A stretch of 64,000 nt of DNA from Obrimoposthia wandeli (GCA_977020255.1 CDROCS010003797.1:186001-250000); one strand, 5' to 3'. Counted from the stretch's first letter, positions 47,192 to 55,194 are shown. Program-made: numbers and translations. Notes: generated from the sequence alone by a model not told the origin.

Positions 47192-48547
47192 TTAACTTCC
47201 CGCTACTTGCATCTCGTTAATAATAATTGAACCGGTACGAATGCTGCCGCGCATATCGGTATCGCTTCCTATCGCAACAATACCAGAGAACATATCCTGT
47301 AATTTACCGGCAATGGTAATTTCATCAACGGGATAAGCTATTTCACCATTTTCGACCCAGAAGCCTGCAGCACCACGAGAATAATCACCCGTAACTACAT
47401 TCACCCCTTGTCCCATGAGTTCAGTCACCAATAAACCTGTACCTAAAGTTTTTAGCATGGCATCAAAGTCACCACCTTGGCCAGCGCTTTTCATGCCGAG
47501 TTGCCAGTTATGAATACCGCCAGCATGACCCGTCGTTTGTAAACCTAACTTGCGCGCAGAATAACTGGTTAAAAGGTAAGTTGCTAAATTACCATCGGTA
47601 ATAATCTCACGGTCAACCGTAGCAACCCCTTCTGCATCAAAAGCGCCACTTGCTAGGGCTTTTTTCAAATGAGGGCGTTCACTAATATTTAAAAAGTCAG
47701 GAAATACTTGCTTGCCAATTGAATCCATTAAAAAAGACGATTTACGATACAAATTACCACCACTGATCGCCGCGATAAAATGACCAAATAACGTATTAGC
47801 AATATCAGCACGGAACATGACCGGTACTTTACTGGTCGCTAATTTTCGTGCACCTAAACGAGACAAAACTTCTATTGAAGCTTGTTGGCCAATTTTACTA
47901 GCACTTTCCATCGCATCAAATTCACGACTAACGGTATAGGCGTAATCACGTTGCATGTCATCACCCTCGTTAGCGATCATCACACAACTTAAGCTGTGGC
48001 GAGTACTCGGGTAACCGACTAACTGACCATGACTATTACCGTAAACTTTAAAACCTTCGAAGCTTGCCAACGTAGCGCCATCTGAATTGGTAATACGTTT
48101 ATCATAACCTAGCGCGATATCTTCACACGATTTTGCAATACTAATAGCTTCTTCAGTCGTTAACGCCTTAGGGTGGTATAGATCTAAATCTTCAGGTTCC
48201 ATCGCGAGAAATTCTTTATCCGCCATGCCAGAATATTCATCAACTGAAGTATATTTAGCAATATTAACCGCGGCTTCTATAGCTTGCTTTAACGCTTTTT
48301 CAGATAAGTCTGCGGTAGATGCACTACCTTTACGACCATCTTTATAAACAGTAATACCAAGCCCGCCATCATTAGTAAACTCAACATTTTCCACTTCACC
48401 TAGGCGAGTATTAACGCTTAAACCTTCCTGACGGCTCATCGCAACTTCAGCGCCATCAGCGCCAAGTGACTTGGCCATTTTCATGGCATCATTAACACGT
48501 TGTTTTACATGCTCTATTTGTATTTGGATACTATTTGAATCGCTCAT
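47192..48547 (-). CDS. pmbA: Metalloprotease subunit PmbA (TldE) (start likely ATG 48547)
   Basis: GITVYKDGRKGSASTADL, TTGHAGG, GDYSRGAAGFWVENG. Confidence 0.95.
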   Translation of the reverse strand: MSDSNSIQIQIEHVKQRVNDAMKMAKSLGADGAEVAMSRQEGLSVNTRLGEVENVEFTNDGGLGITVYKDGRKGSASTADLSEKALKQAIEAAVNIAKYTSVDEYSGMADKEFLAMEPEDLDLYHPKALTTEEAISIAKSCEDIALGYDKRITNSDGATLASFEGFKVYGNSHGQLVGYPSTRHSLSCVMIANEGDDMQRDYAYTVSREFDAMESASKIGQQASIEVLSRLGARKLATSKVPVMFRADIANTLFGHFIAAISGGNLYRKSSFLMDSIGKQVFPDFLNISERPHLKKALASGAFDAEGVATVDREIITDGNLATYLLTSYSARKLGLQTTGHAGGIHNWQLGMKSAGQGGDFDAMLKTLGTGLLVTELMGQGVNVVTGDYSRGAAGFWVENGEIAYPVDEITIAGKLQDMFSGIVAIGSDTDMRGSIRTGSIIINEMQVAGS

Positions 48548-48652
48548 GGCTAAATTATTTCTCACATTTTATCGATACAAACAACAGGAATGTTTTTGCT
48601 GATACTGCTTTGTTGTATACTATAGGTAATTATCACTTTATTACTTAACATT

Positions 48653-49171
48653 ATGCCCCACTCTGCCAACGATATCGATGAATTAGAAGAAGAATTACTG
48701 AGTAAATCGGAAATAAAACGAGAAATGCATCGACTGCAAGATTTTGGCTTAGTCATAGTCAAAATGTCGAAGCATCAACGCAGTAAATTGCCGCTGACTG
48801 ATGAGCTAAAGGCTGCTATGCAGCTTGCGGATAAAATCACCAATAAGCATGAAGCCTTGCGCCGTCATGTGCGTCATATTGCAAAAATACTGGCTGAAAC
48901 GGATCTTGAACCGATTAAGCAAGCTATGGATGTTATGGCCAATAAGCATCAGCAAGAATCAGTTAAATTTGAAAAGCTAGAAAAAATGCGCGATAACCTT
49001 ATCGAACAAGGTAATGACTCAATCGAAGCATTGTTAGCAGAATTCGACACCATGGAACGACAAAAGCTTAGGCAGCTCGTGCGCCAAGCTAAAAAAGAGC
49101 ATAGTGCCGAGAAAGTCGGAAAGCATTATCGCGATTTATTTGCTTACTTAAAAGAGCATGTGGCTTTTTAG
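48653..49171 (+). CDS. yjgA: Ribosome biogenesis factor YjgA/DarP
   Basis: SKSEIKREMHRLQ, ERQKLRQLVRQAKKE; divergent from pmbA as in enterobacteria. Confidence 0.9.
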   Translation: MPHSANDIDELEEELLSKSEIKREMHRLQDFGLVIVKMSKHQRSKLPLTDELKAAMQLADKITNKHEALRRHVRHIAKILAETDLEPIKQAMDVMANKHQQESVKFEKLEKMRDNLIEQGNDSIEALLAEFDTMERQKLRQLVRQAKKEHSAEKVGKHYRDLFAYLKEHVAF

Positions 49172-49193: not shown

Positions 49194-49221
49194 AAAATGC
49201 CTTGATTTACAAGGCATTTTT
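49194..49221. terminator. Bidirectional terminator between yjgA and the dap operon
   Basis: AAAATGCCTTG-ATTTA-CAAGGCATTTTT. Confidence 0.85.
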
Positions 49222-49249: not shown

Positions 49250-50398
49250 CTATAAAATACTGAACTTACTAAATACCTTATAAAGCTCAGTACCTTGGTT
49301 AACACTGGCCGACGCAAAGTGTAGTATCGGAATAACTTGATGATCTAAGCTAATATAGTGCAAGGGATCGCCATCACCGTAGTTATCCATACGAAGAATA
49401 CGCGCTAAAGGCTCTCCAGGAGCTAACGGTTGACCAAACTCAGCTAAGTAATCGACCATACCACCCATAGGTGAATATAACGCTTTATAATCTTCGAGCA
49501 TACAGCAGTAACGCGTCATCTTTTTCGGATGATAATCCTCGCTATTTATCACACCTTGGTACTGTAAATAACTCAAAATCCCTAGTGCATCTTCATGTGC
49601 AATATCAAGGTCGATTTGCTCTTGTGAACCAAGTTCTACGGTAAAGCTTTCTTTAATAATTAACGCATCACTGTGCTGTGCATCGGCTTTAGTGATTGGA
49701 AAATCACGTCCTAAATCAGCCAAGGCTTGCTTTAACTGCCACCAAGGACAAAATGTTGCTTCATCTAATGCGCCATCAAAACTATTCGGGATCAACAAGG
49801 TATGCGGAATATCAAAGTACTGTGCACTCGCTTGTGCATATTCCGGACAATATAAATGCTTACTAGAAATTGGGCCAGTGTGTAAATCTAAAACAATATC
49901 AGCTTGGTGCGCAAGGTGTTGCAGTTGAAAAGCAATGCGTTGCCCTGTAGTCAAACCATAAACATTATGATTAAGTTTTTGGCTTATTTTTTCTAGCATT
50001 AAGGCGCTAAATGCCTGCTCAATTTCGGTGTTGCTCTGGTTTAAGTTTGCTTGGGCAAAAGGCGCAACCATTTCTGTGTCAAAATGATACATACGGTTCC
50101 AATTCACGCCTGTTATCGGATCAAATCGACCTAAGGTATATTCGCCATTTTTATGGTTACAAGCAACAGGATTAGCATAAGGTACAAGCGTAATATTGCC
50201 ATGTAATTCAGTCGTTTTTAATAACTCTAACAACTGAAATATCACGGCATTACCTTGAACCTCTGCACCATGCATATTAGCTTGAATATAAACATTAGGC
50301 CCTTTGCTCTTACCTTCAAGACGGTAAACAGGCACAGTAAGCGCAGCACCACTCGCCATCTCTCCAACATGCATCACTTCTTTACTGACTTTATTCAT
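49250..50398 (-). CDS. M14 succinylglutamate desuccinylase/aspartoacylase-family zinc hydrolase
   Basis: HGAE zinc motif, ANP, NWNR, LDLHTG, C-terminal SPMGG swing domain. Confidence 0.85.
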   Translation of the reverse strand: MNKVSKEVMHVGEMASGAALTVPVYRLEGKSKGPNVYIQANMHGAEVQGNAVIFQLLELLKTTELHGNITLVPYANPVACNHKNGEYTLGRFDPITGVNWNRMYHFDTEMVAPFAQANLNQSNTEIEQAFSALMLEKISQKLNHNVYGLTTGQRIAFQLQHLAHQADIVLDLHTGPISSKHLYCPEYAQASAQYFDIPHTLLIPNSFDGALDEATFCPWWQLKQALADLGRDFPITKADAQHSDALIIKESFTVELGSQEQIDLDIAHEDALGILSYLQYQGVINSEDYHPKKMTRYCCMLEDYKALYSPMGGMVDYLAEFGQPLAPGEPLARILRMDNYGDGDPLHYISLDHQVIPILHFASASVNQGTELYKVFSKFSIL

Positions 50399-50460
50399 AA
50401 CTACCTTCTACTCAATCTTATTAATACTTGACGCTCTAAAGCCTATTAGCTGTATTTCCA

Positions 50461-51723
50461 TTAACGCAAATACCATGAGGCAGGCTCTGCTGCACGTACT
50501 TGCTCAATTTTTCCTTGCTGCAAAACATATTCAGCGGCTATTTGATGACACAGGAAAAAAGGCATACTTTCAGTAAAGCCATAAGCGCCAGCTAAACCGA
50601 ATATTAATTGGTCATCAACATCAACATCATCAGCGATTACCATGCAACCTAGTTTATCTAAGCTAGTACAAAGTGGACCGTGCAAATCGAAATTTCGAGT
50701 ATTCGCCACTGACTCTCTGAGCAGTGCAACAGGAAAAGGCTGTTCGGTTATTGCTGGGCGTAAGAGATGATTAATCCCTCCGGCGAGGACTAGCTGTTGT
50801 TGTTGAAAATTTTCTTTACGATCAACCACTGACGTGACGTAATAACCCATTTCAGCAACAGCAAAACGTCCTAACTCTAGCCATAATTCGCCGACACCTG
50901 CCTGCGCTTTTATCCGTGCTAAATCGGCAATAATTTGCTGCCAGCTTAACGCTTTTCCTGCTTGTAAATAATCAACTCCGAGCCCACCACCTAAATCTAA
51001 AACCTCTAGTGACATATCTAGTTGCTTAGCTAACGATACCAGTGGCGCGACCATTTGTGACCAAAGCTCATACATGCGAGCATTGCTCAACATATTTCCC
51101 CACTGAAAAATATGTAAGCCATTGATATTTAATGCTGGAAAGTCAGATACTTTTATCGACTGCCATTCTTCGCAAGATAAACCAAAGGCGGTCACTTCAT
51201 TACCGCCTAATGGATTTTTTTCACCTTTGGCCCACTGCAGCTGCACCCTCAACAACACTTGCGGTCGACATGACAGTTCGCTCGCTGCTTGTTCAAGCCA
51301 TTGCAGTTGATTTAAGCTTTCAACAACAAAAGTACGCACACCTTGTATTAAAAAAGCTTTCATCTGCCGTTTTGACTTTGCCGGTCCCGTATTGAGAATA
51401 CGATCTGTCTGAACACCTTGTGCTAAAACTTGCGTTAACTCACCTTGACTAGCAACATCGAAATTAAAGCCCTGCTGTGCTAAAGTTTCCAACACGCGTG
51501 ACAAAGGGTTTGCCTTAACAGCAAACCAAAGCTTAATAACGTCTTGTTGCATTAGCTGCGATACGTGCTGTTCAAGATAATCTAAATCATAAAGAAAAAA
51601 ACCTGCGTCATCTTCCCGTATTTCATCACGATGCTTCAGTGCTTCACTGTGCTCGCTCAAAGACTCAAGTACCGCAGGTCTTAGCCAATTTGGCCTAGCA
51701 GGATCATTTAACATAGCAGTCAT
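50461..51723 (-). CDS. Fold-type III PLP-dependent decarboxylase (LysA-like, divergent)
   Basis: FAVKANP (PLP lysine), DVAS.GE, DLGGGLG, GPLCT, GAYG. Confidence 0.85.
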   Translation of the reverse strand: MTAMLNDPARPNWLRPAVLESLSEHSEALKHRDEIREDDAGFFLYDLDYLEQHVSQLMQQDVIKLWFAVKANPLSRVLETLAQQGFNFDVASQGELTQVLAQGVQTDRILNTGPAKSKRQMKAFLIQGVRTFVVESLNQLQWLEQAASELSCRPQVLLRVQLQWAKGEKNPLGGNEVTAFGLSCEEWQSIKVSDFPALNINGLHIFQWGNMLSNARMYELWSQMVAPLVSLAKQLDMSLEVLDLGGGLGVDYLQAGKALSWQQIIADLARIKAQAGVGELWLELGRFAVAEMGYYVTSVVDRKENFQQQQLVLAGGINHLLRPAITEQPFPVALLRESVANTRNFDLHGPLCTSLDKLGCMVIADDVDVDDQLIFGLAGAYGFTESMPFFLCHQIAAEYVLQQGKIEQVRAAEPASWYLR

Positions 51724-51731
51724 TTTTGCTC

Positions 51732-52481
51732 CTAACGCAAGACAGATTCAAGTTCTAACGCGGCATTGCTTTTCTCATCACGGTACTTAACAATCAGAGC
51801 ACAAGCCATATTTAAACCATGTTGCTGCGCCCAAGCCCCGGTAACTGGTCGTGTGCCAGGAACTACAACAGCATTTTCAGGAATATCTGCACCCTTTGCT
51901 AACATGACATTGTTAACACAATCATAAACCGGCACCGACGCCGACAAAGAAACCCCCGGCGCTAACACCGCACCTTTCTTCACCACAATACCTTCTACAA
52001 TAATCACGCCAGCACTTAAAAAGGCATTATCTTCAATAATCACTGGGCTCGCACCAATAGGCTCAAGCACACCACCGATTTGTACCGCGGCAGAAACATG
52101 GACATTTTTACCTATTTGCGCGCATGAACCAATTAAGGCATGGCTATCAACCATAGTGCCACTATCCACAAAAGCACCAACATTGATATAAGCAGGTGGC
52201 ATGATAATGACACCAGGTGCGACATAAGCACCGCGACGAACTGATGAACCACCCGGCACCATTCTGACTTTATCTTCGACGGTAAACTCACGTGCTGGCA
52301 AATTATGTTTATCAACAAAGCCACTATAAATACCGTCAAATACGATATTTTCGCCCGCTTTAAAAGCCGCTAAAATATCTTGCTTTACCGCTGTATTGAC
52401 CTGCCACGTGCCATCGTTATTTTGCTCTGCTGCACGAATTTTACCGGTTTCTAAATCTGTTAATGTTTGCTGCCAAGTCAT
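51732..52481 (-). CDS. dapD: Tetrahydrodipicolinate N-succinyltransferase
   Basis: GAFVDSGTMVDSHALIGSCAQIGKNVH, IGGVLEP hexapeptide repeats. Confidence 0.9.
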   Translation of the reverse strand: MTWQQTLTDLETGKIRAAEQNNDGTWQVNTAVKQDILAAFKAGENIVFDGIYSGFVDKHNLPAREFTVEDKVRMVPGGSSVRRGAYVAPGVIIMPPAYINVGAFVDSGTMVDSHALIGSCAQIGKNVHVSAAVQIGGVLEPIGASPVIIEDNAFLSAGVIIVEGIVVKKGAVLAPGVSLSASVPVYDCVNNVMLAKGADIPENAVVVPGTRPVTGAWAQQHGLNMACALIVKYRDEKSNAALELESVLR

Positions 52482-53482
52482 GAGTTTACTTCTCGTTTGT
52501 TAGTTACTACTGAATGAGGGTGTGCTGCGACATTTGAGGTGTCATCTGGAGTCGGGGTTTGCGCTGAAAGATTATGACTCTCAAGCCATTGCTGAATTTG
52601 TTGGTTAATGGCTTGCAAACCATGTTGCGTGGTTATCTCTTCTTGGCACAGTGGCAAGCGCAGAGTTGCAGAGTTAATTGTTTTAAGTTCTGCCATTAAA
52701 ACCTTAGGGGCTATTGGACTGGTCACTTGGAATAAAGCGGCTATCGCGTTATGCCAAAGAGGAAATAAACCTTCATGCTGATTTGATAAAGCTAATGCAA
52801 CATACTGACATGTAGCTTCAGGCCAAACATTGGCACATACAGAGATCAAGCCTTTCACACCAGCGCCAGCAAGATAAGGCATCATGGCGTCTTCACCACT
52901 ATAAACCTCAACATTAGGGCAATGTTGACGGTAAGCTAATAGCTGATGGATATCGCCACTGGCTTCTTTTAACGCCCAACAATTTTTATGATTTTGCACC
53001 TGTTGCAAGGCCGAAATAGCAATTTTAACGCCAGTACGAGAAGGCACGTTATAAAGCATGCAAGGAAAATCAGCGGCATCAAGTAAACGTGTAAACCAAG
53101 CGGCTTGACCAACGGGACCTGGCTTTGCATAAATAGGACATGTTAACAGGTAGGCATGAATTGGTAAGGTATTGCACTTAGTTATCCAAGCAACTTGCTC
53201 TTTAAGATTATAGCCACCAACAGCAACCATTAAGGGCACCTGCAAAGATATTGCACATACGTACTCAACAATACTTAAATGTTCACTGGCGGTTAAGGCT
53301 AAGCCTTCGCCCGTACTACCTAATAATAAAATGCCATTGTTAGCAGCGTTTTGCTGTAAAACTAAGTTACGTAAGCTGGTGTAGTCAATTTCGCCATCAT
53401 CGAATAATGGCGTGATCAGTGCGGTCCAAACCAATGGCCGGTCTATACAGGGATAATTTTTTGATAATATTTTTTGACTCAT
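52478..53482 (-). CDS. dapA: 4-hydroxy-tetrahydrodipicolinate synthase (start likely MSQKIL at 53482)
   Basis: TALITPL, GSTGEG, YNVPSRTG, KEASGD; ATGA overlap with dapD. Confidence 0.85.
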   Translation of the reverse strand: MSQKILSKNYPCIDRPLVWTALITPLFDDGEIDYTSLRNLVLQQNAANNGILLLGSTGEGLALTASEHLSIVEYVCAISLQVPLMVAVGGYNLKEQVAWITKCNTLPIHAYLLTCPIYAKPGPVGQAAWFTRLLDAADFPCMLYNVPSRTGVKIAISALQQVQNHKNCWALKEASGDIHQLLAYRQHCPNVEVYSGEDAMMPYLAGAGVKGLISVCANVWPEATCQYVALALSNQHEGLFPLWHNAIAALFQVTSPIAPKVLMAELKTINSATLRLPLCQEEITTQHGLQAINQQIQQWLESHNLSAQTPTPDDTSNVAAHPHSVVTNKREVNS

Positions 53483-53563
53483 TTCTCTCGAACTCTTGTT
53501 GTTCGGAGAACTTTTAGGCGCTTGCACAGACAAAATTTCAGGACGAAATTTGGCCTTTACAAA

Positions 53564-53764
53564 GGCCAGAAGCTCTCCACCTAGTAGGTGACAGTTGCAA
53601 GGATTCAACCTAATGCTTAGTCACTATTTCTAGTCACTAAGCGTTAACAACCGATAATTACATTATCAAAAATATAATTACCTCGGCGTTATACCCCCTC
53701 ATTATTGCTCACTAGAGTTTGATCTCTTCACAATAACTACCTGGTTAACGCTCCTCTTCTGGCC
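53564..53764 (-). ncRNA. Lysine riboswitch (L-box)
   Basis: Minus strand GGCCAGAAGAGGAGCGTTAACCAGGTAG...GAGGGGG...GCCGAGG...TCGGTT...GGTTGAATCC...ACTGTCA...GTGGAGAGCTTCTGGCC with closing P1, upstream of dapA. Confidence 0.93.
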
Positions 53765-53883
53765 CTATCATCGTAGCGATTAATGTATTGCAATTAATCT
53801 CACTGGAATAAGGGACAACAATATTAAAACATTTTAATCTAAGAGCAGTCAATAGACGTCTATACGTTTATTGATAATGACAT

Positions 53884-55194
53884 TTAACTAGCTGATTGAA
53901 ATAGTTTTATTTCTTTCTCCAGCCATGAAATACGATCTTGTCCCCAATAACTTGATTTGCTATAACTAAAACAAGGTACACCCCACAAGTTTAACTTAGT
54001 CAGATCAGCTTGGTTAATATCTGCCCATTGTTGCCAATCATGCTGTTGCTGATAGGCATTTGCTTCATCTACATCTAAGCCTAAATCTTTTACGATATTA
54101 TCAACGTTCACAGGATCGGTTAAATCAATACCATTAACATAAATAGCTCTAAAACAAGCCAAAATATATTCCGTTGCTTTGCCTTGTTGTTGAGCCCAAG
54201 CAAAGAAACGATAAGCATTAACAACCCCTTCACCCAATGGGTCAACAAAACCATTAAATTCAATCGCTAATTTTTTAGCTTCTCGAACGGCATCTAAATA
54301 AATGTACTTTTGTTTTACCACCGGAATCGACTCGCCACGCATGAGCAATGGCAATACAGGCTTAATCACCAACTCAAGTTGATTAGCTTTAGCTAAATCA
54401 ACAGCCTGGACAAAACCAAGATAAGAATAGGGGCTGCGTAAAGATAAATAGATCACCAAGGGCTCTGCAACAGACGATTTCATTGGCTCAGATTGTTTAT
54501 TTTGTTCAGTAAGCTTTGCATTTGAGTTAATTTTTTCAAACAGGTGATTAGACGATAAAATATCACTCACTTTTTCAACTAAAGCTAATTTTAGTAGCGT
54601 TTTCTCAAAATGATACAAGCGATCAACACCAACAAACCAGTCGCCAGCAAAGAAAATATTTGCCGGTGCATAATGGCCCTTTTCTTGTAAACGCGCTTGG
54701 TTTTTCACTTGATGATTAATCGTCGGTGTTGACGTCTGAAAATGCTCGTTATATAGATTCCCCCAAGTTTTGATGAAAATATCTTCCGCATTTTCAATGT
54801 TGTTCTCAACTAACTGCCAAGTCTGCTGGCCGGTAGTAAGTGACATTAACGAGGGTTCCGCTGTAATGTTAATCAACTGATACTGCTCAGCGGTTAAGTT
54901 CGCGTCTTTAATCGCCCAATGCCGATAAAGTTTTGGTGAAATCGTGATGCCGGGTAATGCTCCCCAAATAAAAAGGACTTTAAAATTAAGATGATAATAC
55001 TGCGCTAAACGAGAAAGCATTTGTACTAACATAAAACTCTGGGGATCATTGAGTGAAAGGTACACTTCCGCCGGTGCTTTTTTCCCAAAAAAACGAGCCA
55101 AAGTAAAATAACGAAACAGTAATAATTGCTGTCTAAATGAACTATGTAGCCACTTTATTTTTAATCGTAATAATGTTTTGTTAAAAATAGCCAA
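53884..55194 (-). CDS. Tandem DsbA-fold / 2-hydroxychromene-2-carboxylate isomerase (GST-kappa-like) protein
   Basis: Domain 2 has SLRSPYSYLG and WGVPCF...WGQDR; domain 1 is degenerate (SLNDPQSF...FVGVDRL); TTG start with AAGGAG SD. Confidence 0.75.
   Translation of the reverse strand: MAIFNKTLLRLKIKWLHSSFRQQLLLFRYFTLARFFGKKAPAEVYLSLNDPQSFMLVQMLSRLAQYYHLNFKVLFIWGALPGITISPKLYRHWAIKDANLTAEQYQLINITAEPSLMSLTTGQQTWQLVENNIENAEDIFIKTWGNLYNEHFQTSTPTINHQVKNQARLQEKGHYAPANIFFAGDWFVGVDRLYHFEKTLLKLALVEKVSDILSSNHLFEKINSNAKLTEQNKQSEPMKSSVAEPLVIYLSLRSPYSYLGFVQAVDLAKANQLELVIKPVLPLLMRGESIPVVKQKYIYLDAVREAKKLAIEFNGFVDPLGEGVVNAYRFFAWAQQQGKATEYILACFRAIYVNGIDLTDPVNVDNIVKDLGLDVDEANAYQQQHDWQQWADINQADLTKLNLWGVPCFSYSKSSYWGQDRISWLEKEIKLFQSAS

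Follow-up and report, generated by a model that had tools for sequence, protein, structure and literature searches.

A lysine-riboswitch operon pairing a candidate M14-family DapE with a non-canonical LysA-like decarboxylase may encode an undescribed variant of bacterial lysine synthesis

The described system closest to the locus studied here is the succinylase branch of diaminopimelate (DAP) synthesis, with the enzymes DapD, DapC/ArgD, DapE, DapF and LysA. We analysed a stretch of 64,000 nucleotides (the window; GCA_977020255.1, CDROCS010003797.1:186001-250000, from Obrimoposthia wandeli) in which a lysine riboswitch is followed by four genes: dapA, dapD, a gene for a LysA-like decarboxylase, labelled DC, and a gene for an AstE/AspA-family deacylase, labelled M14. 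The operon resembles the succinylase branch in its entry through DapA, in a DapD that passes its equivalog model, in succinyl protection, in its presumptive lysine product and in the lysine riboswitch, a form of regulation common to many bacteria. It differs in that a putative M14/AstE desuccinylase takes the place of the M20 enzyme DapE, in that dapF is never found in the operon, and in that DC falls below the LysA equivalog cut-off and lacks the amino acids responsible for recognising the distal amine and the D-carboxylate.

The individual enzymes have described relatives of their own. DC shares its fold and clade with SbnH, FigC/FslC and BtrK (6knh/6knk, 2j66; PMC7857480), and in it as in them the catalytic Cys is followed by a residue that is not acidic (Thr or Met). 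The substrates of these enzymes carry an acylated side-chain amine or carboxyl, SbnH being an N-citryl-L-diaminopropionate decarboxylase. They function in the biosynthesis of siderophores or antibiotics and recognise citryl or carrier-protein groups, whereas DC keeps the two arginines with which DAP decarboxylase (DAPDC) holds the alpha-carboxylate and sits in a lysine operon. M14, in turn, has the catalytic domain of AstE, DoeB and aspartoacylase (PF24827), their His/Glu/His plus Glu set and, presumably, their hydrolysis of N2-acyl-L-amino acids; unlike them it is about 380 aa long with a C-terminal domain of its own, and would act in lysine synthesis rather than in arginine or ectoine catabolism. 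Pathways that keep an N-protecting group until the last step are those of ArgE (arginine) and LysK (the LysW/alpha-aminoadipate route to lysine). Their late deprotection is like that of the route proposed below, but the protection is by acetyl or LysW and a decarboxylation step is absent. A precedent for a non-orthologous N-succinyl-LL-DAP desuccinylase that fills a dapE gap is Echvi_1427, the alternative DapE of Bacteroidota, an M20-type amidohydrolase confirmed by complementation (GapMind 2026, PMC13759103); M14 differs from it in fold, and its role here is derived from sequence comparison. Our literature search found the Echvi_1427-type M20 enzyme as the only alternative DapE, and no paper on an M14-type DapE or on the decarboxylase clade of DC.

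All elements of the cassette lie on the minus strand, the riboswitch preceding four co-oriented open reading frames (ORFs), and a terminator that works in both directions follows:

53562..53766, minus strand: lysine riboswitch aptamer, RF00168 (cmscan 90 bits against a gathering score of 30, E 2.4e-22)
53483..53561, minus strand: expression platform with alternative helices around the Shine-Dalgarno sequence (SD) of dapA, a putative translational switch
52478..53482, minus strand: dapA paralogue, 4-hydroxy-tetrahydrodipicolinate synthase, 334 aa (TIGR00674 239 bits, cut-off 206)
51732..52481, minus strand: dapD, short-type tetrahydrodipicolinate N-succinyltransferase, 249 aa (NF008808 298 bits, cut-off 204)
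50461..51723, minus strand: DC, alanine-racemase-fold decarboxylase dependent on pyridoxal phosphate (PLP), 420 aa (PF02784 and PF00278)
49250..50398, minus strand: M14, AstE/AspA-family zinc deacylase, 382 aa (PF24827 AstE_AspA_cat 105 bits against a threshold of 25)
49194..49220, both strands: bidirectional intrinsic terminator (11-bp stem, 5-nt loop, T-runs on both strands)

This layout agrees with an initial annotation made from the sequence, which had described a lysine riboswitch at the head of four co-oriented genes with gaps of -4, 8 and 62, no internal terminator, a strong terminator after M14, and dapE and dapF outside the operon. The RF00168 match spans model positions 1-182 of 182, untruncated, and is the sole family matched by an Rfam scan of the 64-kb window. 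ORF coordinates give the same intergenic distances (dapA/dapD -4, dapD/DC 8, DC/M14 62 nt), the stop of dapA overlapping the start of dapD by 4 nt. Two weak terminator-like matches inside dapD are at chance level (6 found against 5.5 expected), and the only strong terminator, the hairpin at 49220..49194, closes the operon, being common to M14 and the convergent gene yjgA/darP. ORF and family scans place neither dapE nor dapF within the operon. The TTG at 53608 that the ORF finder chose for dapA falls inside the riboswitch, the real start being the ATG at 53482 behind the SD GAGAGAA; the encoded DapA has a C-terminal tail of about 40 aa past the TIGR00674 model. On the E. coli-type model TIGR00965 the dapD of the window scores 196 bits, below the cut-off of 375.

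From the end of the aptamer to the ATG of dapA there are 80 nt. In the minimum-free-energy fold of the leader (53600..53465; -39.9 kcal/mol, z -3.85) the 3' segment of the aptamer, GGAGAGCUU, pairs with AAGUUCUCC, and the SD GAGAGAA is left free. An alternative pairing, judged by eye, joins UUCUCCGAAC to GUUCGAGAGAA, which is the SD itself, and would be available once lysine locks the aptamer. The element is thus found in the 5' leader of a lysine synthesis gene, with SD-sequestering and anti-sequestering helices. Since such a sequestering helix is present and no U-run terminator was found in the dapA leader examined, the arrangement suggests translational control by lysine. We regard it as close to certain that the operon is lysine-biosynthetic and lysine-repressed. 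Contigs of a marine metatranscriptome, 90-95% alike, cover the riboswitch and all four genes and bridge the dapA/dapD and dapD/DC junctions, not DC/M14; they are compatible with expression and prove neither transcription nor co-transcription.

The assembly that holds the window is eukaryote-sized (1.35 Gb, 6912 contigs) and multi-organism, comprising a host and many bacteria, and it carries at least 22 canonical lysA plus many dapE and dapF from different bacteria. An inventory of the whole assembly is therefore uninformative on the bacterium of the window, and inventories were made instead in reference genomes reached via related loci.

These inventories point to M14 as the desuccinylase of the pathway, a non-orthologous DapE, which we consider very probable. 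The initial annotation had offered this as its simpler alternative; it is now the best-supported part, through mutual exclusion with DapE in Francisellales, its position as sole candidate in several genomes and residues that stay the same after loss of dapD and DC. The assignment to the AstE/AspA family rather than M20 also held: besides its PF24827 match, the protein matches no M20 model in Pfam or NCBIfam scans, is outside the DapE family (TIGR01246) and passes no NCBIfam equivalog, the only match being DoeB (TIGR02994), which reaches 38 bits (cut-off 403). Orthologues of the protein include the structural-genomics entries 3fmc (E 1e-125) and 3lwu (E 1e-121), both with function unassigned. 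Residues H43, E46, H173 and E255, which from knowledge of the family we take to be the His/Glu/His zinc ligands and the catalytic Glu, are invariant in 40 diverse relatives and 72 locus-derived sequences, and R91 and R102 are likewise invariant.

M20 DapE is absent from the genomes of Bacteriovoracaceae, Caedibacter, 'Thiotrichales' and Francisellaceae, and in Bacteriovoracaceae M14 occurs without DapE in 4/4 genomes. DapL and Ddh, as alternative sources of DAP, gave nothing above their cut-offs in the DapE-less genomes tested. The operon DapD is the only copy in these DapE-less genomes, and the operon DapA is also the only copy in G010-G013; where both are single-copy and DapE, DapL and Ddh are missing, M14 is the sole desuccinylase candidate. 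Among 61 genomes of the order containing Francisella (here Francisellales), 34 carry M14, none of them with a DapE above cut-off, and two carry DapE without M14. This mutual exclusion is the classic pattern of non-orthologous displacement. True DapE is absent in 59 of the 61.

In Alteromonadales M14 and DapE coexist, and in Colwelliaceae, Pseudoalteromonas and Photobacterium the cassette accompanies canonical LysA, DapE and DapF. The genomes of Shewanella, Ferrimonas, Alteromonas, Paraglaciecola and others have M14 but no DC orthologue. Shewanella (L057:6325-9110, and L064) has a two-gene operon, riboswitch-lysC-M14, with canonical DapE present and dapD2 and DC absent, so M14 is lysine-regulated even without these two genes. 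Thalassotalea litorea (L045:5640-8059) has riboswitch-dapA-M14, dapD and DC being lost together from an otherwise intact cassette. In a FastTree phylogeny of M14 the DC-less sequences nest among the DC-linked ones, which hold the basal positions; this implies several independent losses of dapD-DC with M14 kept. An alignment of 43 DC-linked and 29 DC-less M14 sequences has no position with a fixed difference between the two sets, and 46 of its positions reach 95% identity or more in each set. Because M14 persists without DC and with its residues unchanged, its substrate would be supplied by the canonical pathway, namely N-succinyl-LL-DAP. An M14-type DapE role appears to be undescribed.

The decarboxylase had been called non-canonical, and this too was confirmed. 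The lysA model TIGR01048 has a cut-off of 298 bits. LysAs of bacteria, archaea and cyanobacteria, used as controls, pass it; DC scores 193 bits and its orthologues 182-229 bits. The score on the model for the exosortase-associated decarboxylase is the same as on the LysA equivalog, and that on the FslC model only 49 bits. Among solved structures SbnH (6knh, E 1.8e-35) comes ahead of V. cholerae LysA (3n2b, 1.4e-30); T. maritima DAPDC follows, with BtrK close behind.

To compare active sites, we mapped the T. maritima (Tm) residues of PMC8277567 onto DC via a HMMER alignment and then built an alignment of 42 DC orthologues and eight canonical LysAs. Retained in DC are the PLP lysine K70, D89, the pyridine-N Glu E283, the catalytic Cys (CTS motif) and the distal-carboxylate arginines R286 and R322. 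The acidic residue that follows the catalytic Cys (C-E; Tm Glu315), Glu in the eight canonical LysAs, is Thr in 42/42 orthologues. SbnH and BtrK have Thr at this position as DC does, and FigC has Met. Glu315 of the T. maritima DAPDC is the residue to which the distal amine of meso-DAP binds; in the E315T variant the activity on DAP falls from 675 to 26 mU/mg, and 2-aminopimelate becomes the preferred substrate (PMC8277567). More generally, the Cys-adjacent acidic residue binds the side-chain amine in ODC, ADC and DAPDC, and is replaced in FigC, whose substrate amine is citrylated (PMC7857480). The si-face His (Tm His179), which in this fold hydrogen-bonds the carboxylate of D-substrates (PMC12091041), is Phe206 in DC and Phe in all orthologues (HxHxGSQ to HxFQWGN); a reaction at an L-centre would fit DC for this reason. 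Three more motifs are altered in 42/42 orthologues: MND to (I/V)NH, with Asp to His; RPALY to RPA(I/V/L)T, with Tyr to Thr; and TMSSNYN to TESMPFF, in which the Tyr of NYN is replaced. D-specific enzymes of this fold may carry Tyr where L-ODC has Phe397, a point to which we attach no weight.

DC is the only LysA-like gene in G010-G014 and in 16 of the 30 DC-bearing Francisellales genomes, from which it follows that DC makes lysine or a precursor of it. In many lineages, including small Francisella genomes and Alteromonadales, it coexists with canonical LysA. Its link with M14 is close. In 401 genomes of the order containing Cognaticolwellia, 23 of the 25 with DC have M14 immediately downstream, though their relatives also have true DapE; the two exceptions are a contig end and the Colwelliaceae genome G126. 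In Francisellales all 30 DC genomes have M14, even where the two are unlinked. We lean slightly towards the view that DC does not handle meso-DAP as a canonical LysA would.

The cassette recurs far from the window. A profile built from diverse M14 relatives retrieved 80 genomic loci, which we scanned by tblastn with the four window proteins. DC lies directly upstream of M14 in 42/80, dapD adjoins wherever the contig reaches, and dapA usually precedes dapD. The carriers are Colwelliaceae, Pseudoalteromonas, Photobacterium obscurum, Bacteriovoracaceae (a different phylum from that of the window's bacterium), a 'Thiotrichales' isolate, Caedibacter and Francisellaceae, and cassette dapD is 63-92% identical across all cassette loci. 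A lysine riboswitch was found by Rfam upstream of 8/8 diverse cassette loci and one Francisella locus; counting the window, it precedes the cassette in 10 of the 12 loci with enough upstream sequence. The operon of Bacteriovoracaceae and Francisellales reads riboswitch-(asd)-lysC-dapB-dapA-dapD-DC-M14, and in it the stop codon of one gene often overlaps the start of the next. The recurrence of riboswitch and gene order in distant lineages is more than chance. Since several Colwelliaceae cassettes gave no dapA match, the conserved core is dapD-DC-M14; the cassettes without any dapA match are L028, L033, L039 and L044. The genes after M14 were considered as further pathway members and rejected as unrelated (phospholipase A1, desaturase, DUF3103, UbiD).

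Genomes of Bacteriovoracaceae and Francisellales have no DapD other than the short-type one (sole DapD in G007-G014 and G026), which in Colwelliaceae and Pseudoalteromonas is a second copy beside the housekeeping E. coli-type DapD. In Photobacterium obscurum (G007) the cassette-type DapD was found and the E. coli-type was not; the housekeeping gene may have been displaced by the acquired DapD, or it may fall in an assembly gap. In Francisella sp. 19X1-34 the operon riboswitch-lysC-dapB-dapA-dapD-DC is not continued by M14, the next genes being those of an amino-acid permease and a small alpha/beta hydrolase (L109, G026:C4); its M14 orthologue is on another contig (L100), where the riboswitch is absent.

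Some of these operons had been listed before. A 2017 survey (PMC5584792, Table 1) gives, behind lysine riboswitches, 'dapA-dapD-lysA-hypothetical1-hypothetical2' for Pseudoalteromonas and 'lysC-dapB-dapA-dapD-lysA' for Bacteriovorax marinus. It thus took the decarboxylase as lysA and M14 as hypothetical, without a functional reading; its 'hypothetical2' is the unrelated phospholipase A1 gene. The survey traced the riboswitch operon to the ancestor of Pseudoalteromonas, held it to be restricted to that genus, and reported that in Colwellia psychrerythraea the riboswitch stands on a lone dapD (PMC5584792). Both the restriction to Pseudoalteromonas and the lone dapD of Colwellia are superseded by the distribution found here.

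Based on these observations, we propose a route. When lysine is scarce, the riboswitch would free the ribosome-binding site of dapA and the four genes would be expressed. DapA would raise the flux into tetrahydrodipicolinate (THDP), which the short-type DapD would succinylate, and a housekeeping aminotransferase encoded outside the locus would yield N-succinyl-LL-DAP. DC would then decarboxylate the free L-amino-acid end of this compound to N2-succinyl-L-lysine, from which the M14 zinc deacylase would strip succinate to give L-lysine. The same M14 would also hydrolyse N-succinyl-LL-DAP as a non-orthologous DapE; it is this second activity, as proposed, that would let M14 persist alone in DC-less genomes and replace DapE in Francisellales and Bacteriovoracaceae. 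The locus would in this way form a lysine-repressed, self-contained branch from THDP to lysine via N-succinyl-LL-DAP and N2-succinyl-L-lysine. We put this forward tentatively as the leading reading, without holding it to be probable in itself; the substrate of DC and the dual specificity of M14 are both inferred. With equal reserve we suggest that the variant, in which the succinyl group is kept, an SbnH-like decarboxylase acts and M14 doubles as DapE, is native to Francisellales and Bacteriovoracaceae and was spread horizontally as a riboswitch cassette into marine Alteromonadales.

Three DAP species have a free alpha-amino acid end, and of these N-succinyl-LL-DAP as the substrate explains the most: the amine-binding Glu is lost, the carboxylate Arg kept, extra room is available and the proximal site is of L-type. 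The order of the genes, dapD-DC-M14, agrees with it too, as do the near-obligate pairing with M14 and the fact that DC has long coexisted with canonical LysA. The initial annotation had already suggested decarboxylation of N-succinyl-LL-DAP followed by desuccinylation, and the invariant changes of Glu to Thr and His to Phe now lend this putative reaction residue-level support; it would need an M14 with two substrates. Several observations weigh against it. DC gains an invariant Glu (in TES), four residues after the tyrosine of GAY, at the place where Arg387 of FigC binds citryl carboxylates, and by this analogy the new Glu would suit a free distal amine better than a succinyl carboxylate. Shewanella, Ferrimonas and the Alteromonas group, which have no DC, keep M14 with the same conserved residues as in DC-linked M14s, and because the substrate it would have there exists in the canonical pathway, M14 would have to be bispecific. 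Francisella keeps M14 far from DC, and G126 (L110, G126:C6:3000-13000) has dapD-DC alone, with a DC 81% identical to that of the window and without M14, dapA or a detectable riboswitch. N2-succinyl-lysine is not known as a metabolite, and our literature search yielded no paper on it as such. The G126 genome, of 3.1 Mb, is without the housekeeping DapD as well and may be incomplete.

The simplest chemistry would be canonical, with M14 as a non-orthologous DapE and DC as a highly diverged but genuine meso-DAP decarboxylase; the cassette would then supply lysine-repressible isozymes of DapA, DapD, DapE and LysA and share DapC/ArgD and DapF with the housekeeping pathway. The strong evidence for M14 as a DapE analogue argues for it, as do the PLP lysine, pyridine-N Glu, catalytic Cys and both distal-carboxylate arginines that DC retains, and the gene is listed as lysA in PMC5584792. 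Those Bacteriovoracaceae and Caedibacter genomes that have no LysA-like gene besides DC do have DapF, so the canonical route closes in them. TmDAPDC E315T keeps about 4% activity, and the TES Glu of DC could compensate for the lost Glu. However, meso-DAP as the substrate accounts for none of the substitutions: the distal-amine Glu, the si-face His, the Tyr of RPALY and the Tyr of NYN are replaced in 42/42 orthologues across two phyla, and the LysA score stays far below the equivalog cut-off (193 bits against 298). The nearest solved relatives act on acylated L-amino acids, DC occurs alongside an intact canonical LysA in small Francisella genomes and Alteromonadales, and in eight Francisellales genomes that carry DC both LysA and DapF are missing. 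We regard the canonical reading as doubtful, if possible. An alternative that we consider unlikely is that M14 acts only as a DapE analogue releasing LL-DAP, and that DC converts one L-centre of this directly to L-lysine, bypassing DapF and meso-DAP, with no succinyl-lysine formed. A single M14 activity would then suffice, in agreement with the unchanged residues in DC-less genomes. The proximal changes of His to Phe and Tyr to Phe would be accounted for, as would the apparent relocation of the acid (C-E lost, TES gained), for an L-centre on PLP would mirror the chain; so would the coexistence of DC with LysA and the DC-bearing genomes without DapF and LysA. But the distal centre of LL-DAP has the L configuration as in meso-DAP and a free amine, which this fold binds, irrespective of the stereochemistry at the proximal centre, by the Cys-adjacent acid that in DC is Thr. 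The near-constant M14 after DC, in genomes whose relatives have DapE, is left unaccounted for, and an LL-DAP decarboxylase has no known example.

A last candidate function for DC is that of a PLP-dependent epimerase of DAP or succinyl-DAP that replaces DapF, the operon ending at meso-DAP. We know of no racemase in PF02784, and DC retains the decarboxylase signature, including the pyridine-N Glu. This idea is favoured by the known DapF2, a PLP-dependent member of the alanine-racemase family (PMC13759103), and by the gene content of Francisellales, where 40 of the 61 genomes are without any DapF and DC is found in 11 of the 15 genomes that keep LysA without DapF. Yet the presence of DC and that of DapF are not anticorrelated in this order (the four cells are 11, 19, 10 and 21), and the apparently complete genomes G446 and G459 have M14 and LysA with neither DapF nor DC. 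A lysine riboswitch would also be odd on an operon that made no lysine in LysA-less genomes. With no anticorrelation in the phyletic pattern, we rejected DC as a DapF replacement; it is very improbable. The same counts show that a bypass of DapF cannot be argued from the absence of the gene. DapF is missing also where canonical LysA is kept, as in the 15 genomes just mentioned, and we therefore rejected its absence as proof. Because these 15 keep LysA, Francisellales must have another epimerase or LL-DAP peptidoglycan; direct meso formation is a further option for the DapF-less members. What probability remains beyond the four readings belongs to something else.

As to the bacterium of the window, its M14 protein is 81-95% identical to proteins of Colwellia and Cognaticolwellia, and on this similarity we assign the contig to a Colwellia-type bacterium of the Colwelliaceae. 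Another contig of the assembly (C6174) carries a lysA-dapF region with 83% DNA identity to Cognaticolwellia aestuarii, and is probably from the same organism as the cassette because its distance to that species equals the cassette's. A dapE contig of similar closeness to Cognaticolwellia aestuarii was not found in the assembly. Just downstream of the operon, pmbA (minus strand) and yjgA/darP (plus strand) are divergent (47192..49171). Upstream of the riboswitch lies an ORF of 436 aa (53884..55194, minus strand) with a C-terminal DSBA-like thioredoxin domain at residues 247-429; its N-terminal half, about 245 aa, has no match in Pfam or NCBIfam.

The pathway to lysine and DAP is found in every textbook and has long been a target for antibacterial agents. 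Our data point to an unannotated DapE of M14/AstE fold, which databases carry as 'succinylglutamate desuccinylase/aspartoacylase family' or 'predicted deacylase'. Such an enzyme would fill the dapE hole in Francisellales and Bacteriovoracaceae and give a function to 3fmc and 3lwu. The 'lysA' annotated in these operons has lost the residues of meso-DAP recognition, and automatic pathway reconstructions that use it may be wrong in kind. The operon may stand for a form of lysine synthesis in bacteria that has not been described. If the succinyl-DAP route is true, lysine is made without DapE, DapF, LysA or free meso-DAP, and if either this or the LL-DAP route is true, lysine supply would be decoupled from the meso-DAP pool for the cell wall, and amino-acid biosynthesis would gain a new reaction and possibly a new metabolite.

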